Below, in pieces: positions 12,786 to 41,806 of a DNA stretch of 64,000 bases. Position 1 is the stretch's first letter. Every line of letters starts with the position of its first letter. Origin of the DNA: Monocercomonoides exilis PA203 (taxonomy: Eukaryota > Protista > Preaxostyla); the NCBI GenBank assembly GCA_001643675.2, contig LSRY02000023.1, positions 1,054,001 through 1,118,000 of the forward strand, given 5' to 3'. The position numbers and the translations under genes are program-made. Below the pieces are notes generated by a model. The model worked only from the letters and a program-made list of their open reading frames with translations. It was not told where the DNA came from and did not search any database.

Positions 12786-15700
12786 TCATTCGCAAGAATC
12801 AAAAGAATGCTGAAGAGCAGGAGTGGATTGAGAAGAGCAAGCTTTTGGAATGATAAAAGAGACATCTTCAGAAAAGGAGTTAGAAGAAGAGGAAGAAGAA
12901 GAGGAGAAAGAAGAGGTGGAAGAGGATGAAGATGAATGAGAAGAAGAAACGGGTTGTGAACTCTCAAAAAGTGGGGAAGATGTCTGAATGAACGGAGTTG
13001 CATTGGATGCGTGGGCAGGAGAAGATTGAACAGCGAAAGCGAACTGAGAGCTTGGCGAATATTGGAACGGGCGGAGATCAAAAGCAAAGGAATCAACAGA
13101 GTCAGCAATCGACTCACGCTCATCGTCTTTTAACATTTCTTTGTCACTCTCAGCACCTTCTTCGGAACAACCACTAATGTTGCTTTTGTCTTCTTTTGCT
13201 TCTCTTTCTTTGAATGAATTCAATTTTTCTGCATTGTTTTGAGCAAAAAGTGATTTGAGTGCTGATTTGTGCTTTCCACATTTGCCATCAGAATCAACAG
13301 CATCAACAGCAAATATACCATCTTCTTCAAACACTCTCAACTTTGCACTTTCTTCATGAATTTGCACATTTACCTCGTTTTTCAATCTTTCTCTTTCTGT
13401 TTTCATCTCCTTTTCGTTCTGTTTATGATCATAACAAGCCAATGCAAACTGTCTCTTATCTTTTGATACGTCTTCGTTCCTGTTCAAATGAATGTTTTTG
13501 TCTGTTTGTGAATCATAAACATCTGCAAACAAATCTTTCGGTTGCGAAAAGAAGAATTCTCCTTCTGAGCTCCGCACAGCCTTCAAGTCAAAATTTGACT
13601 GCATCAAATCCGATGAATCCAAAGGAAGTTTATCTGAAAAAGACAATGGCAAAAAAGAAGTCGGAGAAGAAGAAGAGGAAGAGGAAGAAGAAGAAGAAGA
13701 AGAAAAGAAAGAGCTTTTCTCAAGTTCTTCAGCAATTCCTTCATGAATGAATTCGTTTTCCTTAATTGATCTTAAAGGCGTTGAATTCCATGCTTTGAAA
13801 AGAAAAGGGGAATTTTGACCGGAAAAGGGAGAATAAAAAGGAAGATTCGAAGACATCGAAGAATGTTCCTGTATTGCACGAAATTTTGTTTTGTTGTGTG
13901 TTTTTTCATTGAAATTTTCATTTCGATTGACAAAATCATCGTCTTTATTCCCCATCTTCTGCTCCATTTTATCCAAACGTTTGAGGTTTGCCAGCGTTTT
14001 GAACTCGAATTTTGGGATGTCAGCAGAAGAATAGAATGTTTCAGTGACGGATTCAGCCTGCAAAACAGAAGGGGCAGAAAAAGGAGCTTTGGCAAGTTGT
14101 TCTTTGCATCCACTTTGTTTCATTAATTCTTCTGTTGGTTCAAATGCAAAGTTTATTGTTGTACTTGAAATCTCATTCTCAATTGTTTTGTTGCTCGTTT
14201 CATTCTTTTTGTTCATTTCTTTTTTTTCTCCTTCATTTGCAGTTGTCTTATCATCAACCAAACTACCAACATCGACAATTGAGGCATTCTTAGAATCATC
14301 AATGAAATCTGCTTTTGTTTTTGTTTTTGGTACAGTTATCATCTTTTGAGATGGCATTAATACAGAAAAATGAGTGAGTCCAATGAAATTTGTTGCATCT
14401 TCTGAAGAAAAAGCTGAATGTTCAGGTTTTTCAGAAGGAGCTAAATGATTCAAATGAGCAAATTGAGCTAACCTTGAAGAAAGAGTAAGTTTTCGAGAAG
14501 ATAAATCAGATAGAGAAGTAGCAGCTTCTTCTGAAAAGTTGTGTTTTGGTGGTTGCGATGGGTCTTCATTGCTTTTCTGATTGATTTTTCCATTTTGATT
14601 CTTTGAATCGCTATTGCTATGGTTTAAGTATTCTTCTTCTGATTGATCATTGTTTCTTTCATTGGAAAGTGAAATTTTATTCAATTTTTCTGGTTCAATG
14701 ATAATTTCTTTCTCTTCTTCTTCCTTCTCCTCATGTTGTTTTGTACAATTAGAGATATTTTCACCTTCAAGTTTGTAATTGTTGCTAGTTTCATATTCTT
14801 TCTCTTTAACAATTGATTGAATGATTGGAGTATCTTCATTTAGAAACAAAGTTGGAATTTCAGAAGATGAAGAAGAAGATGAAAAAAAAGAAAGAGACAA
14901 TTGAATATTTGAAGGTTTAATGGGAAATGAAGAATTTTTGGCTGCTTCAGATTTCTCTGTTGATTCGGATGGAATTGAAGTTAATTGATTGGAATTTGAA
15001 CAAGCAGAATCCTGCGCATCAGAAAAAGATGTTTCTTTTGAATGCTCAAAGGAAAGTTGGCTGTTATTATCATTTGAAGCATTATTGTTGGTAATATCGG
15101 TATTATTGGAATTATTGGAGTTATTATATGCACAATTATTAGCAGTATAAGGATAATGGCATTCCTTATTTTCACAGTCTTCAGTAGTTGAAGATAGAGA
15201 AGAAATTGATACAGAAGAAGAAGAAGAAGAAGAAGAAGAAGAAGAAGAAGAAGAAGAAGAAGAAGAAGAAGAAGAAGAAGAAGAAGAAGAAGAAGAAGAA
15301 GAAGAAGAAGAAGAAGATATTGAGAACGCATAGCTGTTTGTGCTTTTGGAGAGAAAAGAGGATTCAAAATTGGAAGAATTGGAAGAATTGGAAGAACTGT
15401 CAATATGAGGAGAAGGAGCATCAGAATTAGCATTTAGAAAAGAAGAAGTTAACAAAGAGAAAGAAGAGGAAGAGGAAAAGGAGGAAGCTGAAGAAGAAGA
15501 ATTTAACTGAATTTGTTGAAGTTGCTGTTGATTTTGGTTTGGGTTTTGAATTTGTTGTTGTTGTTGCAGAAGAGAAGAGAAAATGACAAAAGAATTGGAA
15601 GGTGTCATTGAAGGAGGAGAAATGTTTGTCAAGGGTTGAGGGTAAGCAGGTTGAAAAGGAGTGAATGAAGAAGGAGGAAGAGAAGGAGGAGAAGCAAAGG

Positions 15701-18088
15701 TGATAAATGAAGGAGTTGAAGAAGAAGGATTAGAAGAAGCAGGAAAAGAAGAAGGAAAAGAAGGCATTTGTGGAGTTGAATGAAAATATTGTGCATCAAA
15801 AGAAGGATTGCATTGTTGAGTTGTTTGAATGGGAGGCTGTTGAAAGATGAAAGATTGATTTAATTGAGAAGAATTCATTTGTTCATTGAAAATTGGTTGG
15901 ATTTGTTGTATTTGAAGAATTCGTTGTTGCTGATTCTGTTGTTGTTGGTGCTGTTGAAGATATTCTTGCTGACTGTGTGGTTGGCATTGAAATTGGAGTT
16001 GGTCAGGAAATTTTGATTGCAGCAATGGAGAAGGTAAAGAAGATAAAGAATAAGAAGAGGAGGAAGGCAAAGAAGAAGCAGCAGAGAAAGAGGAAGGAGA
16101 GGAAGAAGAGGAAGCAATTGGAGGTTGAAGAGAAGAAGATTGAGCAGAAAAAGAAGGAGGAGGATAAGGAAAAGCAACCTGAACCAATGCAGGAGCCTGC
16201 TGTACTGATGAAGTCTGTGGCAGATACAACTGCTGCTGGCAAGGCAATTGAGATGCAGATGGAAAATTCAATGAAGAATAGCTCACTTGCCCTATCTGCT
16301 GCTGAATGAAAGGGAAAGCAGAAGATTGACAGAGCGATGTTTTGAGGGCGGGCTGAGGAAAAGAAGAAGAGGGAATTTGATTGATCACTCGAAAATACGG
16401 TTGTGTGTTGAGAGTGGAAGAGAAGAAGAGAGAAGGAGGAAGAAGAAGATGAGGTTGCATTGAAGACGATGGCTCAATTGGTTTGTTGTTTTGAGGCTGG
16501 AGAAGGAAAGGAGAAGGCAAAGGAGGCTGAGACGAATGAAAAGGTGACGAGAGAAAGGGAGATGTGTTGATTGGCGTGTGGGGTGTTATATTTTGAGAGG
16601 AAAGTGGGGTGTTTGAAGGAGGACTGAAATTTGGTGGGATTTTGTCGGGTAAAATAAGAGGATTATTCTGTTTGTGGGGGAAAGAAGGAGAAGATGATGA
16701 AGAAGAAGAAGGTTTTTGTGATTCAGTTGGGGTATTTGATTGATTGCTTGTTGATGGCAGAGAAGGAGAATGGATAGATGGAGATGTAGAAGCAGATGCA
16801 GAAAAGGAGAAAGAGGAAGATAAGGTTGAGGAAGAAGAAGAAGAAGATGCACAAGAAGAAGATGACAAAGAAGAAGATGACAAAGAAGAAGATGACAAAA
16901 AAGAAGAAGAAGAATTAGACAAAACAGAAGTACTCTCTGCATCGTTGTCTCTTGGCAGCGCCCACTCAGACACCACTTTCTTTCCGTCAATTGTGTTCTC
17001 GTGGAGCTTCTCTAACGCACAAGCAGCTGCCTCCTTTGTGTGGAAGTGAATGAACGCGTGTCCCATCTGCTTCTTCGAACTGAAGTCGATCGGGATCGCC
17101 ACAGACTTCAGCTGCAGCCGCATCTCAGCCGGCAGCAGCGCCAGAATCTTCGTCCTCAACCTCCCAACGCTGATATCTAATGGCAATCCTTTCACAAACA
17201 CACACATGATCTGCTCCATAATCTTCGGATCAATCGCCCGCCGGCGCGCAAATGTCAGGCTCAGCAGGGAGCCTGCGAGGTAGACGCCCTGCAGCTTGTT
17301 CATCGCTTCGAGGGTTGTGGCGTGCGACGGGTACGATGCCCAGCCAAAACCACGGGATTTCCCTTTGTTGTCTGTTGAGAGGATAAATTTGCTCATTGGT
17401 ATCTATAATATAAATTTAAAAGTATAAAAGTTTTTTTTTTTTAAATAGCACAAATGTGATAATTATTTGGTTTTGGGATTCAACAAAATGTCTTGCAAAC
17501 TCCTGATTTGGCTTCAAGAGTTTTCTGGATGTATTCAGAGTCAAGATGAACTGGTAAATTAACGATGAAAAGACTGTTTTTCGCATCGGCATATGTAACA
17601 ATTGCGTTATGACTATCATTCACAAAATAAAATATTTCAATTTATAACAAATTGGATTTATTACAGCATTTGTTTAGCAAACCGTCTTCCGGTGGCGTTA
17701 TCTCTAAAAGAAGGTGGAGTTTTACATTTTAATGCAGCCATTGTTGAATCCATATCAGCAAATTGAACAAATGCAAATCCTTTTCATCAAAAGCATAAAA
17801 TTAATTGGAAAAATCAAATAAGTATCCACCTTTTGCAGAAGCGTTCTTTTTCTTTTTTATAATTGTTGCTTCAATAACATCACCAAATCTTGAAAACTCA
17901 TTTTTAAGATCAGTTGCCGTAACATTACTTGGAAAATCGCTCTGTTGAGTGCATTATTAATAAAGCAAATAAAAGTGATAAATGTGAAATACCACGTAAA
18001 CTCCACAAACACCACCTAAGGCCCCAGAAGAAATTTCCGAATTTTTAGTATCTGCACTTTCGGAATATTCTTCGCTCGGTGAAGCCAT
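12786..18088 (-). CDS. Three-RRM RNA-binding protein (hnRNP Q/R / RBM47-like) with a long Ser/Pro/Gln-rich tail, about 1677 aa, 5 exons
   Basis: GT-AG introns at 17942-17992, 17780-17829, 17613-17682 and 17403-17500 splice in frame. RRM1: VYVSDFP..KGFAFVQF. RRM2: SLFIVNLP..SRGFGWASY. The linker IDPKIMEQIMCVFVKGLP resembles the hnRNP Q/R RRM2-3 linker. RRM3: MGHAFIHF. The last exon contains the 1536-aa ORF. Confidence 0.88.
15214..15315. repeat. (GAA)34 microsatellite encoding poly-Ser on the minus strand
   Basis: Directly visible perfect trinucleotide run inside the RRM gene. Confidence 0.95.
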
Positions 18089-18492: not shown

Positions 18493-21400
18493 TCAAACAA
18501 CAGGTTGCAGTGTCTGCAGCATCATCCATTGAGCCTTATCTCTCTTTTTGATGTACTCCAACTCTCTTTCTCTCCTCTCCAGCATCTTCATTTCCTCTTC
18601 TATTCCTTCATTTTGTTCAGCTATTAGCTTTTCTTTCCTTTCTTCTTCAGCCAATTCACTCATTTCTTCATTCAACCTTTCTTTCATTCTTTTGCATTCC
18701 TTCATTGAATTCTCTATTTCCTTTTGTTTTTCTTTTTTTCTTCTGCCAAGTTCTTCTATCTTCTTCTTCAATTCCTTTGTTTCATCATCTCCTTCCATCA
18801 CACCAGATAATACAGACTCTAATTCAAATAGCATAAATTCTGCTTTGTTCAGCAAAGTTGCATTGAAATTCGATCTTTTTTGGGAATTTTTTTCATTTTT
18901 TTGTGATTTTTTGTCATTTTTTCGATTTTTTTCTATTTTTTGTGGTTTTTTCTTTCTTTTTTGATGAATTTTGGATTGTTTTTGTGGAAATGAGGTTGTT
19001 TGATTGGATTGCTGTGGAAATGAAGGGGTTGATGAAAGTGAAGAAGAAGTGGAAGAAGAGGAAGAAGAAGGAGAAAGAGAAGAAAAGGAAGAAGAGGAGG
19101 AAGAGAAAGAAAACAAAGAAGAAGCATTATTTCCATTGGAATTTTTTGTCAAAGAAGGAATTTTTGAGTTCAAAGAAGAGAAAAATGTGTTTTGAGGAAA
19201 AGAAAGAGCAGCAGGACTCAACGGACAATGAAAAGAAGGAGAAGAAGAGGAGGAGGAAGAGGAAGATGAAGTGATGAGAGGAAGAGGGGTGGGGGAAAGA
19301 GAAGAAGAAGGAGAAGGAGAGGATGAAGAAAAATAAGGATAAGGAGAAATGTTATTTTGAGGTGTTTGCATTGAAGAAGAAGATGAAGAAGGAGAAGGAG
19401 AACGAAAAGTGTTTGTGAAGAGAAGAAAAGGAGGAGGAGGAGGAGGAGGAGGAGGAGGAGGAGTTATCAAAGAAGAACGAGATGGAATTGAATTATGTGA
19501 TTGTTGTGTTTGTTGCATTTGAAGTGATTCAGATGGAGTTGAAGAAGAAGAGGAGGAGGAAGATGAAGAGGAAAGATAAAAAGACGGATAAGAAGAAGGT
19601 GCAGGAGAAAGAGATGAAGAAGATGATGATGAATAAGAGGAAGAAGAAGAAGGAGAAGGAGAAGGAGAAGAATATTCTATTGTTGTTGTCGTTGTTGATT
19701 GATTAGCTTGAGAAGGAATCAAAGGCAGAAGTGGAAGAGGAGTTGAAATGATGTTGTGTGAAGAGTCAGTTGAGGATGAAATGTTTGAATGGTTATCAGA
19801 AGAATTGTTGAATTGAATTGAAGAAGAGGAGGAGGAAGAAGAGGAAGAAGAGGAGGAAGAGGAGGAAGAGGAGGAGGAAGGAGAAGAAGAGGAAGGAGAG
19901 GAATAAGAAGAGGAGGAAGAGAAGGAAGTGAATGAAGAAGAAGAAGAAGAAGAAGGATTATGTTCTGTTGAAGAAGCAGCTGATGAAGTGAATGAAGAAT
20001 TTGTGAATGGAGAAGGCTGAGGAGGAAGAGGTTGATTCAAAGAAGAAGAAGGAGAAGAGGGAGAAGGAAGAGGAGAAGAAGAAGAAGAAATAGAAGAAGG
20101 AGGAAGAGGAAAACGAGAAAGGAGAAGATGAGGAGTTGATGTTGCATTCATTGCTTCATCTGCAAATGAAGGTGATGAAGAAGAAGGAGAAGGAGAAGGA
20201 GAAGGAGAAGAAAGAGAAGAAAGAGAAGATGATGATGATGATGAATTTTGAGGTATTTGTTTTGTCATTGATGATGAAGATGAAGAAGAAGAAGCAAATG
20301 GATAAGAAAGAGAAGAGGGAGAAAGTGAAGAAGAATAAGAAGGAGAAGCAACAACAGAATGCGTTACATGATTCGCTTTGGATGCATTTTTCACTTGTTG
20401 TTTTGTGAATGGCACACGAATTTGCACTCTTTTTGAGACAAAACTGTTTTTTGGCTGGTTTTTCAATGAAGAAAATGATGAAATCATATTCTTGTTTGTG
20501 TTTATTCTTGTTTTATTCATCTTTTTTGTTGTTTTGAAATTCTTTTTCTCTTCTTTTTTTATTTCTTCTTCTTCTCTTTTTCTTCCTCCTTCTCTTTCTC
20601 CTCCTCCTCCTTTTAATTCTTCTTCTTTTTCTTCTTCTTTTTCTTCTTCTTTTTCTTCTTTTTTCGATGTTATTTCATTTGGAGCCCATTCTGTTAGTGA
20701 ATGAGAAGCAAGATATGAAAGTGTTAAAAAATTTGCGGATGTGTCAAAATTTTTGTGTTGTGGAGATGAAATGGAAGATGAAATGGAAGAAGAAGAGGAG
20801 GAGGAAGATGATGTGGATAATTTAGAGTTAGAATTTAAAGAAGAAGAGGAAGAAGAGGAGGAGGAGGAGTTAAAAGAAGAAGGGTAAGAAAAAGAAGAAG
20901 AAGCAATAGAAGCATTTGGAGTGGCATTTGCATTCATCTGTAAAGAAGAAGAGGCAGAAGACAATCTGTTTATGTGTTTGGACTTGTTCAATGAAGAATC
21001 AGTTTTGTGCTTCAAATGAGAAGGAGATGAATTAAGAGAGGAAAATCTGGAGAAATGAAATGAGGAAGAGGAAGAGGAAGAAGAAGAGGAAGAGGAAGAG
21101 GAAGAGGAAGAGGAAGAGGAAGAGGAAGAGGAAGAGGAAGAGGAAGAGGAAGAGGAAGAGGAAGAGGAAGAGGAAGAGGAAGAGGAAGAGGAAGAGGAAG
21201 AGGAAGAGGAAGAGGAAGAGGAAGAGGAAGGTTTTGAGGAAGAAGAGGAAGCTATTGATGGAGTTACTGATGAAGAGGAAGAGGAAGAAGAAGAAGAAGA
21301 TGATGATGAAATTATCTTCTTTTTCTTTTTCATTAAAGAAGAAGAAGCAGAAGAAGTAGAAGAAGAAGAAGAAGAAATTGAATGAATTGAAGAAGAAGGT

Positions 21401-22271
21401 TTTTTCTTGTTTGTCAAGCGATGTTTTCGAGATGTTTGAATTGAAGAGCCAAAATCGTCTTCTTCTGAAGGATGCTCAATTTGAGGCAGAGAAGGAACAA
21501 AATTGTGGATGGGTGATGGATTTATTGGAGATAAGGTGGAAGTGGAAGAGATGGGAAAGGAAGAAGGAGAGGAGAAAGAAGAGGAGGAAGAGGATGAAGA
21601 GGATGAAGAGGATGAAGAGGATGAAGAGGATGAAGAGGATGAAGAGGATGAAGAGGATGAAGAGGATGAAGAGGATGAAGAGGATGAAGAGGATGAAGAG
21701 GATGAAGAGGAGGAAGATAATGATGATGAAGAAGGGGGAAAAGAAGAAGATGAAGGTGTTGTTGACGATGATGTGGATGATGTGGGTGATGTGGAAGATG
21801 AAGTGAAAGGAGATGAAATGTTAATAGAAGATGATATTTCTGTCTTTTTTGCTTCAATTGTGTTTTTATCATTCTCATTTGAGTGGGTCATTTTCACTGT
21901 CTCTTCTTCTTCTTCTTTTCTTTCAGTTTTTCCTTCTTCTTCTTCTCTTCTTCCTCCTCTTCCTCCTCTTCCTCCTCCTCCTTCTTCTTCTTTCTCCTCT
22001 TTCCTAACTCCCTCTTTCTTTCCCCTTTCATCTCCATCTTCTTCAACAAGCAGAGAAGAATCAAAAGGCGGAGGAGATTTCATTCTGTGTGAAGACGAAT
22101 GCAGTTGATGTTGATGTGGCAGCTCTTCAATAAGAGACGAAAGGGCAATGTTCGTTCTCTCTAAGTGGTTTCTTTCTTTGGAGTGAAGAAGAAGAAGGGG
22201 AGAGGAGGAGGAAGAGGAAGAGGAAGATGGAGAAGATGATGATGAAATTGAAATAGAAGAATGAAGAGGAG

Positions 22272-22304
<33 letters not shown>

Positions 22305-24132
22305 AAGAAGAAGAAGAAGAAGAAGAAGAAGAAGAAGAAGAAGAATGAGAATCCAATGAATATTGTTGCGTTTCTTTTTCATTCTTCATCACTTTCTGTT
22401 CCATTTCAACCCCATTCTTCAAACTTTTAATTTTCTCTGCATTCCTTTTTTCCTTCTCATTCACATTTCCTTCTTCCTTATCTCCTTCCTCCACCAAAAG
22501 AGAAGGCATAGATGACTTCTCTTCCTCTGCCTCGGCTTGCAACAGAAGCGAAGGTGAATTGCTAGTTTCACTCAGCTTGCTCAAACTGCTTGAAAACAGG
22601 CCAGAATAAATAGAAGCTTTGCTTTGTGACAGAATGTGAGAGGCATTCTTTGATTCAGTTGATTTCATTAAGTTAACTGACTCAATTGAACCAATTGAAT
22701 CACACATATCACACAAATCGCTCAAATCACTTAAATCGCTCAAATCGTCTGATTTGCTTGAATTTCCACGCAGCTGCTGAGAAGAAGCAGAAAACAATGC
22801 TTTCTCTGCTGCTTCCTCGCTCTGTTTGAAGCAATTGCCGGTCTCAGCTGATTCCTTTGCTCTTTGCTGCTTGTTCACAAGATCCAGACTACATTCATTG
22901 TCTGCACTGTATGTACTATCTTTCTCCACAATGTCTGCTATCCTTCTGTGAAACCCCTTTTGTCTGCTTTTAGCTTCTTCTTCTTCTTCTTCTTCTTTGA
23001 ATTCTTCTTCTTCTTGCTCCTTGTTCTTCATTTCCCCCTCAGCTGGTTTGTTTGCTAAGTTGCATCTGCCTTCGTCTCTGTGGTCGGGAGGGGCAGGCAA
23101 ACAACTCTCGCTTATTTTTTCTGTTCTGTATTGGAAAGAAGGCGAGGATGACGCGTAGAGAGACGACGGGATGGGCGAAGAAGCAGAGGGAGGAATGTCG
23201 CTGATGGCGTCGTTTTGTTGCTGCAGCGTTGTTGATGGAGTTGCGAGAAAAGAGCAAAGGGAATTATTTGTATAATTAATTGGTTTGTCTTCATTTTTTT
23301 GAATGTTTTCTGAATACAAGTGAATATTTGTAGAAATGTGTTCTTGTGGACTTGATTCCACTACAGTTGTTGAATGATCGGACATTGGCAATTGAGAAGA
23401 TAGGATTGTATCATCTTTTTTGTCAAGTGCAAAATCTGAAATGCTTTCTTTTCTGATTCCGCAGTTTAACTCCAATGGATCTATTAATGATGCAAACGAG
23501 TCATTCAAAAATGATTGTCTGTCGATGTGTTCGTTGTCTGATGTAGATGAATGAGAAATATGTGATATTGAATCTGTTTCTCTTTCGTAAGGTGTTGAAC
23601 AGTGCACAGATTGTTGTTCAGGAGAAGCCTGTAAGGATTCGATAGACATTCTCACAAAATCATCATTTTCTGTTGTTACTGGTGACAACAGCGAAGACCT
23701 ACAACTGGATGAAGCCGAGGCTGATAAAAGATTGTTAAATGATGAACCTGTAAGAAGACTAGAAGAAAAAAGAGGGAACCGTGAAGTATGTTCCGTTGCA
23801 TTATTTCTTAAATCATATGAATGCACCTTTGTTGAATATGAGTTTTCCATTGAGCAAATATTCGCCGATATTGTATTAAGTTGTGTGTCTTGTGATTGGT
23901 CATCCATACTTTTATTTATTGAAAGGTCAATGTTTTGATTCGTGTTGCAGCTTATAGAGATCTTTGATATATCTGTATTGTCTGTAAAATTGGCAAAGAT
24001 TTTTCGTTTATTTTTCTTTTCTCTCCAGCGTTCAGATTTTGGATAACGCTCTGCTGAATTTCTAGTAAGAGCATTTGAAGTCGATATGAAATCTATTAGT
24101 TGTTCGGAGTTATCGTTTTCATTGGAATTCAT
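18493..24132 (-). CDS. Hypothetical 1879-aa Ser-rich low-complexity protein with a C-terminal coiled coil
   Basis: Uninterrupted 5.6-kb ORF flanked by AT-rich intergenic DNA. Poly-Ser and poly-Pro tracts, Lys-rich patches, and an E/K heptad-like region in the last ~110 aa. No catalytic domain recognised. Confidence 0.8.
21062..21229. repeat. (GAGGAA)n hexamer repeat, poly-Ser on the minus strand
   Basis: Directly visible. Confidence 0.9.
21589..21706. repeat. (GAGGATGAA)n 9-mer repeat, poly-Ser on the minus strand
   Basis: Directly visible. Confidence 0.9.
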
Positions 24133-26185: not shown

Positions 26186-26899
26186 AAAAAAGTTGGTTTT
26201 TATACGTGATGGACTGTTTTATTAATGTTTGAGAAAAGGAGATTCATTTTAATTTATTGCTAAGAAATTTTTTTTATAACTTACCATTTTGCAGTATTTA
26301 ACAAAATAGAAAATAAACAAACTTGGCCTCTGCGACAGACCGACATTTTTTGAACGATTCGACATGTCGACCGACAATACAATGAACTTTTTTTAATCAT
26401 TTTTTGGAAAAAAATAATGAAAAATAAATGCAAATTTTCAAATAATAAATATTTTCAAACCATTAGCAATTTATTCTGATGTTATAAACTGAATAACAAA
26501 TTAAACAAAAAAAGTTGAATGTTCTATTTATGTGGAATCGACAGGTCAATGTCGAGATCGGTCGAGTGACAAAGATCAGTCGAGTTGTCGCCAAGTCGAA
26601 TTTCTCAGAATCATTGAAAGATGATGATCTGGAAGCAGTCACTTCCACATTTCCAATTGATCTGAAAATCTCTCTGAAAACAATAATAAATGTATGATTT
26701 TTATTACAAACTCATTTTTGATTTAAATATTTCTTTTTTCTATTTTCGTGCGAAATAGCTTTCAGTTTTTTCGAAGAAATGTGAGGAGTTAAAAAATGCA
26801 AATTGTTCCTTTGTTAATCTTATTTTGTCAAAAGTCACATTAAATAGAAATTGTATGCATAATTTGTATTTTTTTTCCATTTATTTATCAATTGCTCAA

Positions 26900-29607
26900 A
26901 GATTATCTTTATCCCAATAAAAGCGGAAAAGAAATATCAAAGATCAATTTTATTGAAAGTGAAGGAAACATTTGGATTGAATAATTACCTGTTTTGAGAT
27001 ATGGATCATTGAAAAAAGATGGTCATTATTATTATTTATGCGTTAACAGCAAATCAGGAATTGACTGTGGCTTTTCTGCAAGAAAAGGATCCCAGAAAAT
27101 TTCTGATCATGAATGTTCTTTGATGAACAAACTTTAATGTTGTCATTTGTTGAGCTGCGATCATCTCATCAATTTTCAGAGTTCACAACAAATTCAATCT
27201 TATCAACTCAACAAGATCAATTTGGGGGATTAATGGAGAAGTTTATGAGACTAATAAGTTACTGTAACATCGCGTTTTTGTCTTCATATTCAGTTGAGTT
27301 CAATTCTTTCATTCGAAATTTAATTCAAAAATCGCAACAAAATCCAACTCTTTCACCAAATATGATTTTTCCTCATTTAACATGTAGGAAACTGTAACAT
27401 TCATGAAACAGGAAGGAATAAGGAAAAAGAAAGAAAGAAATGAAAAGGTTGCAAATACGATGGCCGGAGTGATGATTGATGGAGGTGTTATTTCAAAGAA
27501 AAAATATACAGTGGTTACTGTTGTCCCTTTTAACTTCAATGAAAAATCAATGTTCTGGTGCTTGAAAAAATCTTGTACAACTTCAAAAGATTATTATGAA
27601 CTCGCAGTTGAAATATCGGAGGAGATCAGAGCAGTTTCATCTGAAGTCCGTTGTTTTTGTACTGATGGATTACTTCCTCAAAGGTTAGCAATGGAAAAGT
27701 TATCAAATATTTAAACAACAAAAAAGGAGACAACACAAAGTGTTTTCGTACCCCCATTTTTTATTTACTGTTGCAATCACATCGTCAATTTGGTTTTTTC
27801 TCACTTTCTTGATAGTGATCCATTATTTCAACAAATCAAAGAAAACATTGTTGTCTTTTCAAGATAAGCAAGAGCAATTGCTGTTAAAAATCCGACAATT
27901 CCAATATGTCCAGCGTTCGTTCAAACAAGATGGCTTTGCATTTCAAATATTTGCAATTTTATATTTAAAAACAAAGACAACGACTTTTTTGCCGACATTC
28001 TGAAAGACATCCCGTTAATTGAAGTGTTAAAGTTTGAACTGCTTTAACTACCTCTTCAAACATTACTACTTCAATTTGAAAACGAGTTAACAAAACTTGG
28101 AAATGTCTTTCCTCTTCTTCTCAAAGCATTTGCTCAGTACTATTGGATACTGGACCTAAATTGTTTTTCAGAAGAAAAATGGCAAAGAGGCCTGTGCTAT
28201 ATTATTATTAATCTATTCAATTACACTTAATCAGGTCAAAGAGGAAATACATTCGCCTTGGTTTTTTCTCTCACACCAATTGGAACAAAGCAATATCAAC
28301 AAAGTTTATTCAATTATTCGTATTCATCAGAATTTTTTGAATTGAATAAAATATCAAAGAATGAAAATTCAGATTTTTCATCACACCAAATATCATTTAA
28401 CCACAAACAATCAAATATAAGTGATAAATCATCATCTGTATCATCTGCAGATTCTGTTTTTCAATCAGTTTCAATATGTTCTTCTTCATCTGCTTCTCCA
28501 ATCTGTGAACATGGATCGTCAATTCAAAAAGGTTATTTATCGAATTCAATCAACAAACTGTTTCGAACGACTTGTGATTGTTCTCCGAAAGAATCCAAAA
28601 CGAGAGAAGAAAATATTTATTATTCCGATAAACAATCAAAATTTTTTGATCTCTTAGAACCTCCAGTCTTTTCTTCGTTGACTGTTGAAGGATTTTATGA
28701 TGCACTTTATCAGTATGAGAAAATAAAAATTAATGATAAGCACACGTTCACCACGGTTTCATCTTTGCTTCAAGGGAAAATTTTGGAACAGGAGGAGTTG
28801 TATTCGAGAAAAGACTCCTTATTGCCCCATTTTCAAATTCTTCAATGCATTGAATATTTGCAAAAAAGGAGTGAATATAAAGAATTTGATATGATAAATC
28901 AAGACAACGACGAATACGACGAAGATAAAGATTCAAATAATTTGTTCGAAGAAACATTTGTATTGAAGGAAGCTGAGGAATTTGAAGAAGATGATGTGTT
29001 TAAAACTTCTGTATTTATCGGAAAAAAAAGAAGATATATTGATCAGTCAGTGACCACGCGCTCTGCAAGTGAAAAAAATGACAATCACTTATCGAATGAA
29101 ACAAATATGGAAGAAGATATGGATAGAAAAAATGATCAAATGTTAATCGTTAGTGAAGAAGAAGATGTTATCGATCTTGGATCAAATGCAAAAATATCTC
29201 ACTCAAACATCAGCGATCGTGAACAAAGAATAAAAATTCTTCAGGATATCCAAAAAGTTATTTTAAACGATTGGTTTTTGGGTTTGAGAAGCGGATTTGA
29301 AGATCATGTTGCGCAAGTGCTTTCAAATAAAAGTCGTGAACTTCAAACGCAAATCGAGGCCTTATTCACAACATTTTTATTGGATAGAAGGCAAGCAATA
29401 ACACAAGACGATCCATTTGTATATTACACCGAGATTGGAAAATCAAGTCTCATTACTCATATTAATTCAAACATTTGTTTTGCCTTAGTTGCTTCGCCCT
29501 GCAGCGAGGCATCATGCGAGAGAGCATTCTCCAGAATTAGAAAAATTGTTGGTGACAAACGCCATTCTTTGTCACTTGAAACACTGAACAATCCGTTGTT
29601 GTTGTGA
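26900..29607 (+). pseudogene. Decayed hAT transposase
   Basis: Zn-finger-like C..C..H.C (~27040-27115), VMIDGG (D 27478), FCTDG (D 27664), CCNH = CxxH (27769-27780), and the C-terminal dimerisation motif SPCSEASCERAFSRIRKIVGDKRHSLS (E 29518). Stops and frameshifts, e.g. TAA at 27712. Confidence 0.85.
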
Positions 29608-30222
29608 ATCAGCATTTTCTTTGATAACAACCTTATTATCAACAGGTTTGCAATTGCATATTTTTTTGTTATTTATTATTTTCTATATCGAGATTTAGTT
29701 TTATTTTCCATTATAAACAGGAAATACAACAAAGCAATTTTTAAATGATAAATAATTTTAAATAACAAGCACTTGAAACATTTCAAAATCTTTAAAAGCT
29801 TTCCATATGAACCCATTTCAGACTATTTTGTCTTTTCAATAACCGTTTTACTTCTTTTAAGTTTATGTATTTTGAATAAAGCAGTTCACATCAAATGAAG
29901 ATATGTTTCCTTTTTTTTGCTCTTTTTAATCGTTTCGAATGTAATTGACTTTAAGAATTGTTTGTTGATAACAAAATTAATCTTTAAGGCTTTTTGATGT
30001 GGTTTAATAATTGAATGTCCAAGCATACGAACAGAAATGTTTTTGTGAACTCAAATTTCAAAGTATTATTCAGTATTTTATGATACACAACTGAATATAT
30101 TAAATTGAATGTGTTTTGTTCGTAATCTTGATGCAAGATAGAATATTTTATTGCTAAACAAACTTGAATAAAAAATTTAGCAATTGTTCTCGTTGGCAAT
30201 GCATTCTTGAACAAACTCATTT

Positions 30223-31720
30223 GGCATATGGTACTTATACGCCACCTTGCCAAATTAAAAATAAACTTTAGATCATATGTTTAAAGCACATTTGAAAAGA
30301 TTATTCAATTGTTAATTAGTGGAAAAATCAGATTTTATAGAAAAAAATTTTGATCAACCCATAAAAAAATTCAAAATAATTATGAACCAAATTATTAATA
30401 ATAATATTGATGAGTATATATATAATTCCAATACATTATCGAATGACAAATATTTAATCATTTGATGGAGGAAAAACATAATTTATTGAAGATTTTTAGC
30501 GATAATGGAGAAACCATGTAATGGCTTCACGACATTGTGATTAACACTGTCAGAAGATGCCCAATAGCAACATGTCGTTCATTAATGATTTTGATTAGAA
30601 GAAGCGAAGGAAAATGGTTCTTCAGATGCCGCAAATGCAGAAAAGAAGTCTCTTATAGAACAGGAACTTCGTTTTCAAAATCAAGGCTTTCAATTTCAAA
30701 TCTTATACTGATCCTTTACTTCTTTTACCATCATCTCAGTATTAAACAAACATCATCTCTAACATCATGCGAAAGACACTGTGTTTCTTATTATTATTGC
30801 ATTTGTCTGAGAACATGTGCCCAGATGATTGGTGGAATTCAAACTCCCATAGGAGGTCCTGGCCGCATTGTAGAAATTGGCGAAGCTGTTTGGAAAAGTC
30901 GAAAATACAAGAGAGGTTTTGATTCTTTATCTATTGAGACTTAATTATCAATTGAACTTTTTTATTAGGACGTGCAAAGATACAAATATGGATTTTCGGT
31001 GCTCAGGAACGTGGAGGAAATGCATTTGTTTACCCTGTGGCAAACCGATCTGCTTCAGTATTAATTCCGTTAATAAAAAAATATATTCGTCCCGGAACAG
31101 AAATTCACTCTGATCAATAGAAAGCATATTCTTCTTTGAGTGAGAATGGATTCACACACAAAACTGTCAATCATTCGGAGCTATTTGTTGGTTTTTTTTC
31201 CTTTTTTATTGTCTTTTTTCATGAAATGTTATTTTGCACTTATTCAGATCCAATCACAGGCGCTTGCACAAATCATATCGAAGCGTTGTGGGCTGCACTT
31301 CGAAAATTCCTTCCTTCACATGGAAAAACAAAAATAGAATGCAAGTATTTATCTATTCATTTTTGTTTTTCAGAAATCGAAAAGTTGATTTTTCCATTTT
31401 TGAGTCGAATGTGATAGAATACACTGATAAAGAATACAAAGCTTTTGAGGATGAAGCTTTTGGTCCAGAAGAAGAGGAAGAAGAGGCTGGAGCTGAAATG
31501 CTACACGAAGAAGAATCTTCAGAATCCGATTACGAACTTGAAACAGATACATCATAAGATGGAGCAGAGGATGGAGCTGATGCATCAGAATGAGAGGCTG
31601 ATAAATAAATACAGATTTTTCCACATATCATACTTCTTAAAATTAAAAAACGATTTGATAACTTTAATCATTTCTTTGTATTATAAAGATTTGTGAGGTA
31701 GCTTATAAGTACCATTTGCC
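30223..31720 (+). mobile_element. Merlin (IS1016/IS1595-related) DNA transposon, 1498 bp, nested in the hAT element
   Basis: 25-bp TIRs GGCATATGGTACTTATACGCCACCT vs GGCAAATGGTACTTATAAGCTACCT (3 mismatches). 8-bp TSD ACTCATTT (30215-30222) / ACTCGTTT (31721-31728). Confidence 0.92.
30465..31557 (+). pseudogene. Merlin transposase with introns, inactivated
   Basis: Zn ribbon CPIATC..CRKC, IGGPGRIVEIGE (D to G), RKYKRG, WIFGAQER, IRPGTEIHSDQ*KAY, HKTVNHS, DPITGACTNHIEALW. Introns 30916-30968 and 31191-31247 restore frame. 3' end uncertain. Confidence 0.9.
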
Positions 31721-32737
31721 ACTCGTTTAAGTTTTTTGTTGCAAAATGAATTAGTTCATTTTCTATTTATTCATTGCAAATGTTGATTCATTCTGTTGAT
31801 CGATATACTTTTTTTTTTCAAAGAACAAGCAATTCATATTCTGAAAGTTGTTGGTTTTATTCGTTTTTTTTATCACTCAAAAAGCAGGTTAATGCTACAA
31901 AACAAATTCCTCATTCATCATCTAAAATTTTAAAAACATAACAGAACAAAAACCGTAAAGTTCAAAGGCACTTTCAAAGAAGACATTTTTCTTTTGTTAT
32001 TCACACGATAAAACCATCATCATCGCCGTCCTTCTTATTCAAAAAAATATCTCATTGCTTAAAACAATTCAATAGTAATTTATTTTTCTTAAAAATTTGA
32101 GTCTTCAAAAATAATTGCTTTTTAATTCTCGAATTAGATTTAAAAAAAGGTTTTATTTTGATATTATAGATCTGTGAGTAATAAGGCTGCTTTAGCTGGA
32201 ATGAACGCAGATGGCGAAGTGATTACTGTTGTAAATGAACATTCATACATTTGGATTGCGATGAGAATAATGAAGGAACAATGACTTCGCCTGTTGAAGA
32301 GTCGAATTTGTAGGAGCTCCGGAGGAAAGAGTGAGGCTGATACTGCAAATGCGCTCTGTTGTCCGACATCGTATGAACTGAAAAGTGCTAAGCTTTTCCA
32401 GCTAAAGGCGTTTAACAAAAATGAACAGGAGTGAAAAAATTATGTGGCAGCATACGTATAACTGAAATAAAATTCACTCAATGTGGAAATGGGGCTTGCT
32501 TTACATGCGAATCTGATTTAAAAAGTGATAAACATTTTTTATATAATATAGCACAAGGATGAAAAAGCAATGCGAAAGATATAGTGGAAACAACCAAACA
32601 AACAAAAGATATAGAATATTGAGCACAAAAAGTCAGAAAAAAAATTGAAGAAGAAGAAGACCACTTTAACAAAGACGAAAAAGAAATAAGTTTATGCTGC
32701 TTTAGCAGCAGCAGTAGCAGCAGCAGCAGAATAAGAA

Positions 32738-32768
<31 letters not shown>

Positions 32769-32929
32769 AAGAAGAAAAAGAAGAAGAAGAAGAAGAAGAA
32801 GAAGGAGAAGGAGAAAAAGAAGAAGTAGAAGAAGAAAAGAGGACGATGAAGTTGAAAAACTTTTTTTGTTTGAGCTTCATTTCGATTTCTTTCGAGAAAG
32901 TTTTCATTTGCTTGGCTTGCTAAATGCTT

Positions 32930-34223
32930 CACTATCGTTGTCATCATCTTCTTCATCGTTTTCATCATCATCGCTATCTCTCTTCTCCATCTTCCTCGTC
33001 TCCTTCCTCTCTGCATTCTCTCTCCCTCCGAACTCGCCTCAAAAGGGCTGAATTCCTTCCACCCGACGCACGCTTTCTTCTTCACCTTGTCTGGAATCAT
33101 CACTTTTGGCGCCTCGTATTCAAATCTCCCTTCTTTCGAAGAGCAAAAAGAGCCGTCTGAAACAGGCGGGCGCGGAAGAGGGATCGGAATGAGCAGCTCA
33201 AATTCAACCAGAAAACACAAAGTTAAAAACGGGTGCGGATAGCAAAAGCGAACAAAAGATGTTTTTTTGGCTTTAGAAGGAGGGAAGTTATTGACAACGT
33301 TCATCTTTTTGCCATCTTTGCGTGGCATCGAAGAAGCTTTGCCTTTCACAAGAGGAATCGAAAGAGGCTTTTCAGACAGCATTTTGTGAGTGTTGTGCAC
33401 AAAGAAATGGAGGGTGCAAGAGAGGATGGTGACAGACCAATCATCTGAGGAGAAAAATAAAATATATAAAAAACAAAAAAATAAGAAGTTAATGTGAATG
33501 AATTATTGAACATAATCACTTCAAAAGCACAAACCGTTGTCTATCCCATTCTCTGCCAGTCTGATGTAATTCGCTTTTGTTCTCATCTGCTCAACGAGCG
33601 ATGCATCCATCTTCACGCAAATATTCTCCAATTTCAGTGTCAGCTGTACAACTTCAATTAGATTCACCAGGCGATTTCCGAAGAAGAGCGGGTGCTGTGT
33701 CACAACTGCATGAAGAGTTTGATGACCAGAAGGGAAAAGAGAAAGAGAGAGGGCGGAGAAACTGAAATCTTGGTTCCTCTCTTTCGTCTGTTCCTTCTCT
33801 GTGGTGCTGAGCTGCTCGCAGAAGTCGCTCCGCTCCCAAAAACTCTGATCCAGCCAGGATGAGCCAAAAAATAAAACATATTTTTATTTTGACAGATCTT
33901 CATTCTCAATCTCTTCTCTTAGTGTAGCTTCCCTGTCTTCTTCTCCTTCATAGTCATCATCATTTTCTTCTTCATTTCTGTCTTCTTCTTCATCATCTTC
34001 ATCGTCATTTTCATCATCTTCGTAGCTTCCCTCATCAGAACTTCTTTTCCTCTTCGATTTCTTTCGCTTCAAATGTGAATTTGTTCTTTTCATCAGCCTC
34101 CTCTTCTTCTTCTTCATTTGAGTTGCTTTCTAATTTGCTTTTCCATTTGCTGTTTTCTGCTATTGAATCTTTTCCTTTGTGAAAGTTTCGAATATCTTCT
34201 GCTTCTTCTTCTCCTTCTTTCAT
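32930..34223 (-). pseudogene. Nephrocystin-4 (NPHP4)-like gene fragment carried inside the hAT element
   Basis: Colinear blocks KYVLFFGS, HPLFFGNRLVN, LTLKLENICVKMDASL, TILSCTLHFFVHNTHKML, HPFLTLCFLVEFEL and CVGWKEFSPF resemble the recalled NPHP4 C2 region (LYHGT, PENLLVS, HLDDLFF, ILERRLRVGVHNG, HPAFAVIFQLEY, VRWAVWNP). Phase-consistent intron 33445-33519. Stops and frameshifts present. Confidence 0.6.
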
Positions 34224-34739
34224 TCAGAAAACAATACAAAAATTATAAACAAACAAAAAATAAAAAAATTAAAAAAAAAAGAAAAAATACACATTTTCTT
34301 TATTGTTTTGAAGAAAATGATGAAGGTGAAAAAGAATTCTTTACAAAAACGATCGAAAAGCATACGAAAGTAAATTATCTTCTGATTTTGCTGATGAAAT
34401 GCTTGAGATGCAACGAAAGGAAAATATGAGGAAGAGGAGGAGGAGGAAGAAGAAGAAGAAGAATAGAAAAATACTTATGAATGAGTTATTTTTCTTCGAG
34501 CATTTAAAACAACAACGTTAAAATTATCACTTTTAATCAAATCCACATCAGCAGCAAAGATATCTTAAAAAACTTCCATTCCAAATCATTAAATATAATA
34601 CAAAACAACAATCACTTTGATTCCTTTCATATATCTTCTCCAATTTTTCATTAATTTCTCATTTGTTTTCAAAACACAAAATAAATTATTATTATGGTAA
34701 TAAAAAAATGCAATGAAGTTTAGGAAACTTTGATATATA

Positions 34740-35189
34740 CAGTCTAAACCGGATATAATCACGTCGAATACAATCACATTCGTTTATAGTCACATTTTTC
34801 CATGCATCGACATTTTTTGCTTATTTTTCATTCTATTCCCATCACATATAATCACAGGGCTGAAAATATATAATCACATTTTTTATTATTATGTGTGATT
34901 TTTTCATTGAAAAATCGATTTTTTGATCAAAATCTCAATTTTTCGCTTTTATAAAAATGTGCTCAAATAAGTCAAAATAATATGTATTAATGAAAAAAAT
35001 TGATCAAGCAAGTGAAAAAAATGTATTTGTGTAGAATTTCCAAAAATAAAAAAATCGACCCAACATTAATTATTTAATAAAATAAATTTTTATTTTTTTC
35101 TGTGTAAAGCATCATCGTGTATAATCACAATCGGATATAGTCACAAAAAGTTGTGCAAAAACCGATGTGATTATATCCGGTTTAGACTG
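34740..35189. mobile_element. Tc1/mariner-pogo type MITE, 450 bp, nested in the hAT element
   Basis: 27-bp TIR CAGTCTAAACCGGATATAATCACRTCG (1 mismatch). TA TSD at 34738-39 and 35190-91. Internal TATA(A/G)TCACA subterminal repeats. Confidence 0.93.
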
Positions 35190-35514
35190 TACATGAATTG
35201 CAAAATTAAGGAAAAAACAATCTTTTCAATTTTTTCGACAAATGAATAATTTCTCGACCGACAAATTGAGCACAAAAAATGTGTATCGCAGAGGCGTAAA
35301 ACAAACGTTTGAAGTTCTTTTGAAAATCTTGCTTTTTTCATCTTTAAAAATGAGACAACAAGTCAAATATTAAAAATAAATTGAAAATAAAAAAAGAAAA
35401 TTTGAACAAACAATCATTTCGGAAAATGGGTATGATACGACCAGTGAAAAATTCATATCATAACGATTTCTTTTTCATATTCCTACCAGATAAATCATAG
35501 TTTAATGAAGATAT

Positions 35515-39131: not shown

Positions 39132-41806
39132 AGACCTAATTTTGTATTATTATCTCATTTCTAAAAAGTTTGTAAATAATCTAAAAAGAATAATAAATTT
39201 TCAAAAAAATCTCGAAAAATTGAAAAAGATTGAATCATTCACGATATAAAAAAATGTTGGTATTCAATCACAAAAATTTCATTTTAATTAATGGAACTGA
39301 TCAGATCATTCTTTTAGAAATATTTTTTATCATGGAATAATCAACATTGCAAAACATTCTTTGTAATGTTGAGAAAAGAATTGCACTTCCAACACATATT
39401 GAAACAGTTTCTGCATCAGAGAAAAAATCATTGATTGAAATATCGTTAGAATTGATTCAGGATCCTTTGAATGGATTTTTTCGTCTAGCTGGATTTTCAA
39501 AAAATGAATTTTATATTCTTCTTCAACTTCTCGATCAAGAATTTACTCCGCATCGAGGTGGAAAAAAATATATCAACAATTTCGAAGACCAACTTTTTAT
39601 TTTATTGAATTTTCTTCATCTCGGATCGACTAAAATGACAAGTTATGTTACAAAACCATATTTCAATTCTCATTCTACCGTGATCCGTTTATTACATGAC
39701 ATTTTTTGCTCGGTTAAACAACCACTTTTGGACTTGCTATTTTCTTTTAGAAATGATCGTGTGAGAGAAATTCAGGATGTGGGATTAATTGTAGATTGCA
39801 CTATTCTACCAATAAACCGACCAAGTGGAAAAATAGAAGACGGAATGAAGTTTTTCAGTGGAAAGCACCATTCATATTATGTTAAAGTGGAAGTGGGAGT
39901 AAATCCCAAACTTGGAATTGCCAGCACTATCAGCGATATTTTTCCTGGAAGCACACATGATTATGTTGTGTTTCAACATCATTATCCAACGTTTGAGAAC
40001 AAATTAAGAAAAGCAAAACTGTTGGCATACTCAGCTTACATAGGAGCAAAAACATGGCTAGGGGCTTACATTACATAGCCGTGTGGAACGCCTGAGTTGT
40101 CCAAGCACAGGGTGATCATAGAGCGTTTTTTCGGAAGGTTAAAGACTGTCTTTTCTGAATTTCGACAGCATTGGCCATTAAGCATCGAAGTAGTTGGTAA
40201 TTTTCTTATTGTTGCTGTTTGTTTAACAAATTTTCATATTTTACAGAATCCTTTAACAGCCTCAGATTTAGAAGCAAATAATATTTTTTTGCTGAATTAC
40301 AAATGGAATATGCAAGAAAGCAGAAAGCAAAGAAAGAAGCAAATCAGAAGTATTTGGAGAAACAAAGAAATAGATTGAATTCATCATCACCGACAACTTC
40401 ATGTTCTTCATTATTTCTTAATGACAATTTGGTTTGTTTTTATTTTTTAACCCATATTGATGTTAAATTCTTTGAAAAAACAACATTTTCATCAACAATA
40501 TACCATTATTAATTTATTTTAGAAGTCTTAATGGAGAGCTGTAACCCATTCTCAAGTGCAACTACCAGTGAAAAAGATCAAGAAAAGAAAAAAAAGATGA
40601 AGGTTTGTGAACAAAAAGAAAGAAATAGAGAAGAAAATGAATGTCAAAGAAAAATTGAAAATGAAGTCCACGATCATGAAACCATAGACTACTCATCTTC
40701 ATGGCATCTTCCCTTCCAATATAAATCTGCATGTCTTCATAAAGTTTCATCACCAACTAATTTTCTAATCACATTTTGCTCATCTCAATCTTATTCAACA
40801 TAACCTTCCTCTACTCAGTTAACAGCAACACAACCTTCCTCTACTCAACTTTCTTCATCTTCACAATTGCATTCAAAATCAGTATCTTCTTCAACACCCT
40901 CGCTTCTGCATTCTCTGCCACAACCAAACTTGTATTTTCCTTCAAATCTCACTCTTCCTTCTTCATTTTGCGTATTTCCTCCTCAAAATTGTAATTTTCA
41001 ATCATCTTTGAATTTCACAGCTTCTTCAGGTTCAATTTCCACTCAAAGCAAAACTTATTCATCTTAAAATTAAAAAACATCTATTTGAAAAAAGAAATAA
41101 GAAAGAAGCATATTATTTTTATATTTTTGGATCGCAGATTTTGATTTAAAGAGAGTTTTATTATTATTATTTATTCTTTTTGTTTTTGATACTATTATTT
41201 CCAAGTTGTTCGTTATATGTTGTTTGTTTTGCACATCACTCACAAATGAAGCAAAAGTTGTTGCTTAAATTCTTTAAACATTCTTTTTTTATTTATCTTT
41301 ATATTTTGTGTGATTGAAATGAAAAACTTCTATAATTTATAAAACTTTGACAACATAAAAAGGATTTCCAAAATTATGTTAAAAATAAGACAAAAAAAGT
41401 TATTTGGTGAAATGTGATATGAGAGGAAAATAAAAAAGAAAAACAGATAATATTTATGTTAATGAAACATTTTAATATTCCATCCTCACCTTGCTTTTGA
41501 ACAATTTTAAAAAAGTTTCAAGAAATAAATCAGACATATAAAAACAATAAAATTGTTAAAGAAACATTTTAATACTGAACAAACAAACCTTCTATATCAT
41601 TTTTATTTTAGTTTTATTTTGTTTGTAATCATTCATTTTTTAATTAAAAAAAACGCGATCAGTAAAGCTTTGATCATAAAAATGCATTTAACGGCAAAAA
41701 AAAGAAAAGCATATTTCAAAAAAGATTGAGTCATTCGCGAAAAGAAAAAAACATTCACATAAGAATAAACAATTCGCAAAAGAAATACACATTCGAGTAT
41801 AGGTCT
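39132..41806 (+). mobile_element. PHIS-group (PIF/Harbinger-ISL2EU-Pangu-like) DNA transposon inserted in (TTTTA)n
   Basis: Termini AGACCTA...TAGGTCT. 3-bp TSD ATT (39129-31 / 41807-09). Removing the element plus one ATT restores the (TTTTA)n register. Contains a DDE_Tnp_4 transposase. Confidence 0.72.
39332..41067 (+). pseudogene. DDE_Tnp_4 (IS5/ISL2/Harbinger-type) transposase, decayed
   Basis: FFRLAGFSKNEF..RGGK..EDQLFILLNFL (HTH_Tnp_4-like), IVDCT, FSGKHH, PGSTHD, LAYSAYIG (catalytic D to Y), SKHRVIIERFFGRLK. Stops at 39338 and 40076, a frameshift near 40300, and a low-complexity tail. Confidence 0.88.

Follow-up and report, generated by a model that had tools for sequence, protein, structure and literature searches.

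Host-gene capture by hAT transposons is already known from plants, animals and fungi. In a survey of 100 animal genomes, 208 of 370 Pack-TIR elements belonged to the hAT type, and only four (1.4%) were multicopy (PMC8277862). Pack-hATs were also described from maize (PMC8903248), and in fungi a complete hAT element with a captured histone H3 gene rose by amplification to hundreds of copies (PMC6710886). In literature searches on transduplication in protists and on Monocercomonoides transposons, no protist case was found. The genome of the protist Monocercomonoides exilis consists of 46% repeats, and unclassified repeats make up 35% of the genome (PMC8767320). In this study, we analyzed a stretch of 64,000 nucleotides of this genome (contig 18, positions 1,054,001–1,118,000; hereafter the window), in which positions 26323–35298 are a single hAT insertion, now a dead composite, with two nested transposons and a family-wide host-like gene fragment that an ancestor most probably captured (probability roughly 0.8). 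It is the same kind of capture, here in a metamonad. An initial annotation of the window had regarded Pack-type capture as a property mostly of MULE and CACTA elements and Helitrons, a view that is out of date given the hAT cases in animals, maize and fungi (PMC8277862, PMC8903248, PMC6710886).

The hAT-histone H3 elements of the Dothideomycetes Pseudocercospora fijiensis and Pyrenophora tritici-repentis likewise encode a transposase and carry captured host coding sequence (PMC6710886, PMC3538342). As in M. exilis, the composite was amplified to many copies and one original gene appears intact elsewhere. In contrast to the fungal case, the cargo in M. exilis comprises only part of a very large gene, with an intron, and not a whole small housekeeping gene, the copies number tens and not hundreds, and the host is a metamonad protist. 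Decay in M. exilis occurred by ordinary mutation and deletion, and no sign of repeat-induced point mutation was seen. Pack-hATs share with the M. exilis family the inverted ends and the 8-bp duplication around gene fragments captured from genomic DNA (PMC8277862; PMC8903248), and the 4.3–5.6 kb fragment-bearing derivatives of M. exilis fit the definition as far as they are readable. However, the definition of Pack-TYPE elements requires them to be non-autonomous, and a transposase gene is found in the window copy and in two sister copies. The label Pack-hAT, which the initial annotation had given to the window copy, is thus apt in one respect, as a host fragment with a likely parent locus outside the element was mobilized after its capture, and inapt in another, as a transposase gene is present. 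Unlike the animal Pack-TIR elements, which are mostly single-copy (PMC8277862), one M. exilis fragment has reached a copy number of at least 13. In rice and other plants, Pack-MULEs also captured DNA together with introns, and their gene fragments were also annotated as genes; however, they are Mutator-like, have 9-bp duplications and long inverted ends and often join pieces from several genes, whereas one source gene is evident here.

Boundaries and recurrence of the element

All genome-wide searches were performed on the M. exilis assembly (82.3 Mb, 101 contigs), and positions without a contig are those of the window. The element is flanked by an exact 8-bp target-site duplication, AAACAAAC, which was read directly on both sides (26315–26322 and 35299–35306). 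At the base composition of the window, the chance of such an 8/8 match is ~3e-5. The left end (26323–26761, + strand) starts with the terminal inverted repeat TTGGCCTCTGCGA. The right terminal region (35190–35298, + strand) contains CGAC repeats and ends with the inverted repeat TCGCAGAGGCGTA (35286–35298); its 106 bp occur 29 times in the genome, with 84–92% identity among the copies. Further inwards, the first part of the right subterminal region of the family (34221–34739, + strand) is 82–89% identical to more than 25 copies. The breakpoints of homology to other copies lie exactly at 26323 and 35298.

The two ends of the window element agree with each other at 11 of 13 positions. From ~55 ends elsewhere in the genome a family consensus with 14-bp inverted ends was obtained (TAGGCCTCTGCGAC / GTCGCAGAGGCCTA), from which the window copy differs by one substitution per end. 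In general, inverted ends of hAT elements are ~10–25 bp long and typically start with YARNG. The start of the family, TAGGC, presumably corresponds to this motif, as it agrees at four of the five positions. Repeats of CGAC/GTCGA form two clusters in the left subterminal region (26333–26376 and 26539–26598), and element positions 3–60 and 205–265 are blocks that are kept across copies of the family. The density of CGAC/GTCG is 40/kb in the left 300 bp and 28/kb in the right 106 bp, compared to 2.4/kb in the whole window, which corresponds to a 12- to 17-fold enrichment across both subterminal regions. The inverted ends with one substitution each, the exact duplication and the CGAC-rich repeats had all been noticed in the initial annotation, and all three were confirmed by the consensus, by both flanks and by the enrichment, respectively.

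The left-end pattern has at least 101 genomic occurrences, compared to two for a reversed-pattern control. Left and right ends are paired on the same contig and strand, at distances of 3.0 to 13 kb, in at least 10 other places; that the two ends might never co-occur had been named at the outset as the observation that would speak against a single unit. Eight of the nine readable pairs have their own 8-bp duplication. Six of these are 8/8 matches (contig 6, AATGAATC; contig 17, ATTTTGAA; contig 37, GATAGAGC; contig 20, ATTTTATT; contig 43, AAAAATTC; contig 8, GATAAAAC) and two are 7/8 matches (the contig 36 copy and a second contig 37 copy); for the apparent contig 21 pair, no such match was seen.

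Three copies of the subfamily bear a transposase, namely those of the window, contig 6 and contig 17. The latter two repeat the internal order of the window element: transposase, 29608–30222, 31721–32696, gene fragment and right subterminal region. Together with the single duplication, this recurrence upholds the proposal that the whole unit moved as one hAT insertion. The stretches 26323–30222 and 31721–32696 are held in common with these two other copies only, at 83–86% identity (85–86% for 28100–30222). Within them, the non-coding stretch past the transposase stop (29608–30222; GC 0.25) is shared by contigs 6 and 17 only, and the stretch without recognizable coding sequence at 31721–32696 is 83% identical to contig 17 128596–129583 and contig 6 283196–284174. 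Both 29608–30222 and 31721–32696 were considered as additional pieces of the captured gene and ruled out, as no protein similarity was found.

Apart from the transposase-bearing copies, at least 10 shorter derivatives carry the gene fragment. Fragment-bearing elements of 4.3–5.6 kb were delimited on contigs 1, 2, 8, 13, 29, 37 and 52, and longer ones on contigs 20 and 37. Own duplications of fragment-bearing copies are those on contig 8 (GATAAAAC), contig 20 (ATTTTATT) and contig 37 (7/8) and that of the window (AAACAAAC). No transposase homology was found in the left inner 1.5 kb of the contig 8 copy and the second contig 37 copy, the only two derivatives that are readable there.

Transposase gene

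The transposase gene covers the first 3.3 kb of the element (26762–29607, + strand), and its C-terminal part is open. In the contig 6 copy, an open frame of 949 amino acids (aa) is present, the N-terminal 454 residues of which hit window positions 26762–28119 in frames 2, 3, 2 and 1 (tblastn). The surviving open reading frame (ORF) of the window (28258–29607, 449–458 aa) has a hAT dimerization motif at its end. By its reading frames, the window gene is a frameshifted pseudogene: the initial annotation had located a hAT transposase at the right position, but the gene is broken.

A Pfam scan of ten ORFs of the element yielded a weak hAT dimerization match only. Dimer_Tnp_hAT (PF05699) reaches 22.9 bits at the ORF end in the two sister copies (contigs 6 and 17), above the cut-off of 21.4 bits, which is also exceeded by ~70 further related genomic ORFs. 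Many related ORFs, with open frames of 900–1016 aa, match the window ORF at E values as low as 1e-46. For the RNase-H-like DDE catalytic core with its insertion domain, neither transposase half gave a match in Pfam or among solved structures; visual inspection of the contig 6 protein showed CxxH and RW motifs in its N-terminal half. The element is assigned to the hAT superfamily because its sisters and relatives have the dimerization domain and because it combines an 8-bp duplication with short inverted ends and subterminal repeats. Beyond this subfamily, the search with 28258–29607 gave at least 95 scored hAT-transposase matches among 219 candidates, dozens of them with uninterrupted frames of 900–1016 aa. 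hAT elements may therefore make up a large, possibly active share of the 35% unclassified repeats of this genome.

Probably captured host-gene fragment and its candidate source

The captured fragment lies antisense to the transposase gene (32855–34159, − strand) and was recognized from gene models and homology to large oxymonad proteins. Its left edge is formed by a low-complexity (GAA)n/(GCA)n tract (32697–32854; repeat families D1–D7), and homology to a locus on contig 25 and to other copies of this module begins at ~32854. The fragment is read in a single frame, −1, from 34159 to 32921, with one TAA near 33884, and contains an intron of 87 nt (33449–33535) with GT..AG borders and a pyrimidine tract. 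It corresponds approximately to residues 410–706 of large host-type proteins. Its GC content of 0.43 is that of host coding DNA, compared to 0.25–0.33 in the rest of the element.

The gene models MONOS_9315 (P0001) and P0002–P0005 map onto the fragment. A HMMER search with its 200-aa core retrieved eight proteins, five being gene models of module copies and three being large proteins, namely MONOS_5470p1 (1112 aa), MONOS_9376 (P0009, 2406 aa) and P0007 of Blattamonas nauphoetae (2294 aa). Spliced P0001 is 30% identical to the central region of Blattamonas P0007 over 208 residues (E=4e-24), without a gap at the intron position. As MONOS_9376 and MONOS_5470p1 are mutually homologous in three separate regions, the module represents only part of a conserved gene that is much larger, and since the intron was retained, capture would have occurred at the DNA level. 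The region 32850–34220 matches at least 13 other places with 80–86% DNA identity, and for ten of these places a right end of the family, oriented in the same way, is located no more than ~2 kb away.

In gene model MONOS_9315, the first 'intron' was rejected as a real intron; its read-through (SWVDKCFWDE) matches coding sequence in P0009, and a decayed exon is more likely. At least five annotated M. exilis genes (P0001–P0005; MONOS_9315, MONOS_9580 and others) are element-borne copies of the fragment, and one such gene is named 'putative DDE superfamily endonuclease' even though it has no transposase sequence. The annotation of P0001–P0005 is an inflation of the gene set by transposon cargo.

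Concerning the function of the captured gene, a Pfam scan of P0006, P0007 and P0009 gave no hit, and PF28126 is the precomputed domain of these three proteins. Neither a solved-structure search with P0009 nor Atlas searches gave a usable match for the captured gene, and word searches with P0007 and P0006 returned the queries themselves only. Some motifs presumably resemble those of nephrocystin-4 (NPHP4), which is a lead only.

Other family members hold other parts of the same gene. An upstream exon (~residues 68–212 of the host-type proteins) is located ~1.3 kb from the right end in seven family members. It is missing from the window copy, which between 34220 and 34251 lacks ~1 kb present in other copies. 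On contigs 6 and 17, the copies possess the upstream exon and lack the central fragment; therefore, the ancestor shared by all three copies with a transposase would have had both. A piece near residues 1500–1560 is held by a 3.0-kb contig 37 copy and by the contig 8 and contig 21 copies. In the 3.0-kb member, this piece (contig 37 170445–170600) sits where others hold the upstream exon, and the copies have therefore been shaped by internal deletions that differ in their breakpoints.

On contig 25, three pieces of the gene follow each other in order on one strand (2522161–2522652, 2520822–2521971 and 2517050–2517340), with the spacing of old paralogues. They have open frames of 440, 380–393 and 1163 aa and a gap at the same intron position. 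The locus shares ~85% DNA identity with the window module and 93% protein identity with the element-borne third piece. Within hundreds of kb of it, the family was represented by neither a left nor a right end and, among the 40 of 105 candidates scored, by no right subterminal sequence. The full three-region layout (>1500 residues) is present in at least five diverged genomic paralogues and in a protein of another genus. Based on these comparisons, the contig 25 locus (~2,517,000–2,522,700) is likely the source gene.

Nested transposons

A decayed Merlin/IS1595-type transposon of 1498 bp is inserted at 30223–31720 (+ strand). Its ends (GGCAWATGGTACTTATA...) match as an inverted repeat at 22 of the first 25 positions, and its duplication (ACTCATTT, 30215–30222; ACTCGTTT, 31721–31728) matches at 7 of 8. 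The repeat family has at least 35 genomic copies with 81–93% identity. Both sister copies (contigs 6 and 17) lack this transposon. Since both of its flanks align onto the same 8 bases of contig 17 (129576–129583), this copy shows the signature of an empty site. A 135-aa ORF piece matches the N-terminal parts of other genomic ORFs (E 1e-22 to 1e-13), and the adjoining parts of the matched ORFs exceed the cut-off of PF12762 (DDE_Tnp_IS1595), e.g. contig 10 32876–33604 and contig 1 758068–758775. This points to a relationship of 30223–31720 with Merlin/IS1595, the link to PF12762 being a transitive one. Pfam and NCBIfam scans of the Merlin ORF pieces and the cargo ORFs, including relaxed scans, gave no match, and neither did a tblastn search of the Merlin piece against plasmids.

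Seven Merlin families with 8-bp duplications and 23–29-bp inverted ends have been published for M. exilis (PMC8101967). The nested element resembles them in its 8-bp duplication, its ~25-bp inverted ends and its homology to DDE_Tnp_IS1595 ORFs, but differs in being decayed, without a detectable Pfam domain in its pieces. For an older 454 assembly, 'over 100 copies' of Merlin were reported (PMC8101967). The matches in the genome far exceed this figure, with at least 575 candidates for DDE_Tnp_IS1595; all 150 that were scored pass the Pfam cut-off, and many have frames of 350–670 aa.

The second nested transposon is a miniature inverted-repeat element of 450 bp (34740–35189), possibly of the Tc1/mariner type, that is flanked by a TA duplication and has 23-bp inverted repeats without a mismatch (CAGTCTAAACCGGATATAATCAC). 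In five other hAT copies, the site is uninterrupted. The family comprises more than 460 candidates, and the 40 scored copies are 90–95% identical; this abundance and low divergence suggest a recent burst. Pairs of the miniature element in inverted orientation, a few hundred bp apart, were seen on contig 18 (478914/479387) and contig 25 (2286018/2286900). In the contig 20 copy of the hAT family, an insertion of ~8.3 kb (435019–443307) lies within a few bases of the TA site used in the window. The TATATA stretch in the right subterminal region was thus seemingly struck twice independently, in the window and on contig 20.

The junctions of the hAT element with both nested elements are unique in the genome, and therefore there is no sign that the nested elements ever moved with the hAT element. 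The initial annotation had proposed that the insertion transduced ~3.5 kb of non-transposase DNA, including host exons. Host-gene DNA with an intron is indeed present, but only ~1.3 kb (32855–34159) is host-like. As judged from their ends, duplications and copies, two nested transposons account for ~1.95 kb of the supposed cargo, and 1.6 kb (29608–30222 and 31721–32696) has no host or coding similarity. The capture is also not an event of this insertion, as the fragment is a trait of the family, present in at least 13 copies.

Neighboring features of the window

To the right of the element, a 243-aa ORF (39347–40078, + strand) contains a DDE_Tnp_4 domain (PIF/Harbinger-type endonuclease; Pfam E=1.4e-10). 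The element is flanked by long uninterrupted ORFs on the − strand at 12786–17396 (1536 aa), 18493–24132 (1879 aa) and 52312–60060 (2582 aa). Pfam identified an RRM domain in the first (E=2e-10); the second gave no hit.

Discussion

We propose that an ancestor of the subfamily, which still encoded a transposase, acquired several kb of genomic DNA including introns from a large host gene. The acquired DNA would have come to lie in antisense, with the transposase gene on one side and the right subterminal region on the other. The source gene would have belonged to an oxymonad family of 1100–2400-aa proteins, with the contig 25 locus as its closest extant representative, so that the direction of transfer would have been from host to element. 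Capture might have occurred by template switching during repair of an excision gap or by mobilization of a gene segment between two flanking ends. The composite would then have transposed repeatedly, giving rise to three transposase-bearing copies and at least 10 shorter derivatives. Movement was presumably by hAT cut-and-paste with the transposase binding to the CGAC repeats and the 14-bp ends, as is known for such families. Copies of hAT elements with differing parts, with or without a transposase, are a known product of internal deletions that arise when gaps are repaired, and such deletions would account for the different gene pieces in the copies of M. exilis. The window copy retained the central 1.3 kb, lost the upstream exon and gained frameshifts in its transposase gene. 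The Merlin-type transposon of 1.5 kb and the 450-bp miniature element also struck it; their order relative to the arrival of the window copy is an inference.

Several points weigh against this proposal. Two further copies of the module, on contig 36 (2.133 Mb) and contig 52 (37 kb), are also without a detected right end, and therefore the absence of ends at the contig 25 locus does not by itself prove that this locus lies outside an element. In the search for the right subterminal sequence, only 40 of 105 candidates were scored. The case for the source gene is built on coordinates, identities and open-frame lengths and not on an alignment or a tree. The protein identity among fragment copies (75–92%) is somewhat above the rough neutral expectation at ~15% DNA divergence, and some copies, judged by these values, may be constrained. 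As to the transposase, the window ORF reaches 17.8 bits (E=0.0029) with Dimer_Tnp_hAT, below the 21.4-bit cut-off. A solved-structure search with both transposase halves found no match, and a word search with the 449-aa C-terminal ORF found no homologue, the related ORFs of 900–1000 aa being probably outside its length range.

One alternative does without any host capture; in it, the module would be an accessory gene native to the hAT lineage and the loci on contigs 25, 36 and 52 would be old decayed or truncated copies. This alternative could accommodate the three module-bearing loci at which no ends were detected, the contig 25 locus being known from coordinates and open frames alone. It would also fit the element-borne frames of 275–460 aa that are still open. 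However, the elements hold fragments only, whereas the full layout is found in at least five paralogues and in the protein of another genus, and the contig 25 locus has a frame of 1163 aa and a normal spacing of its pieces. Moreover, the fragment is in antisense, contains a spliceosomal intron and has a GC content unlike the rest of the element. We therefore regard a native origin of the module as improbable.

Much less credit is due to the idea that the window copy itself took up ~3.5 kb of neighboring host DNA, so that its entire non-transposase interior would be host cargo. The perfect duplication around the whole 9-kb unit and an interior that is much longer than the transposase gene are in its favor. 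However, 1498 bp of this interior are a Merlin-type transposon with its own ends and duplication that is not in the sister copies, 450 bp are a miniature element, and the junctions of these nested elements are unique in the genome. At least 13 other copies also contain the host-like 1.3 kb, with an identity of only 80–86%, and it was thus acquired long before the insertion. Finally, the notion that two separate hAT elements or solo ends merely flank resident DNA without forming a mobile unit, conceivable with more than 100 left ends and ~30 right ends in the genome and with the apparent contig 21 pair that has no matching duplication, can be practically discounted, since an exact 8-bp duplication lies at precisely both ends (p ~3e-5) and the same internal order is found in the contig 6 and contig 17 copies, both of which have an 8/8 duplication of their own.

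Within the proposed history of capture and amplification, it is tempting to ask whether the element-borne fragments have an effect on the host, be it through antisense or small RNA directed at the parent gene family or through new proteins that are truncated or chimeric. Some fragment copies have open frames of 275–460 aa and are annotated as genes. We nevertheless consider such an activity unlikely. If it were true, the fragments would constitute a functional system of gene shuffling or regulation in a lineage other than plants, animals and fungi. The parent gene of the spread fragment is a large, possibly ciliary one in an amitochondriate protist.

Conclusions

The current understanding of the capture mechanism is not changed by the case of M. 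exilis. The candidate source gene and the at least 13 copies provide material for studying capture and subsequent internal deletion in hAT elements, and the family shows that a captured fragment can be multicopy, a situation that was rare in the animal survey. For M. exilis itself, the family illustrates how gene fragments carried by elements can end up in the annotation as "hypothetical proteins". It also reveals part of what makes up the unclassified fraction of the genome, namely large and diverse populations of hAT and Merlin elements, many of them with intact frames.

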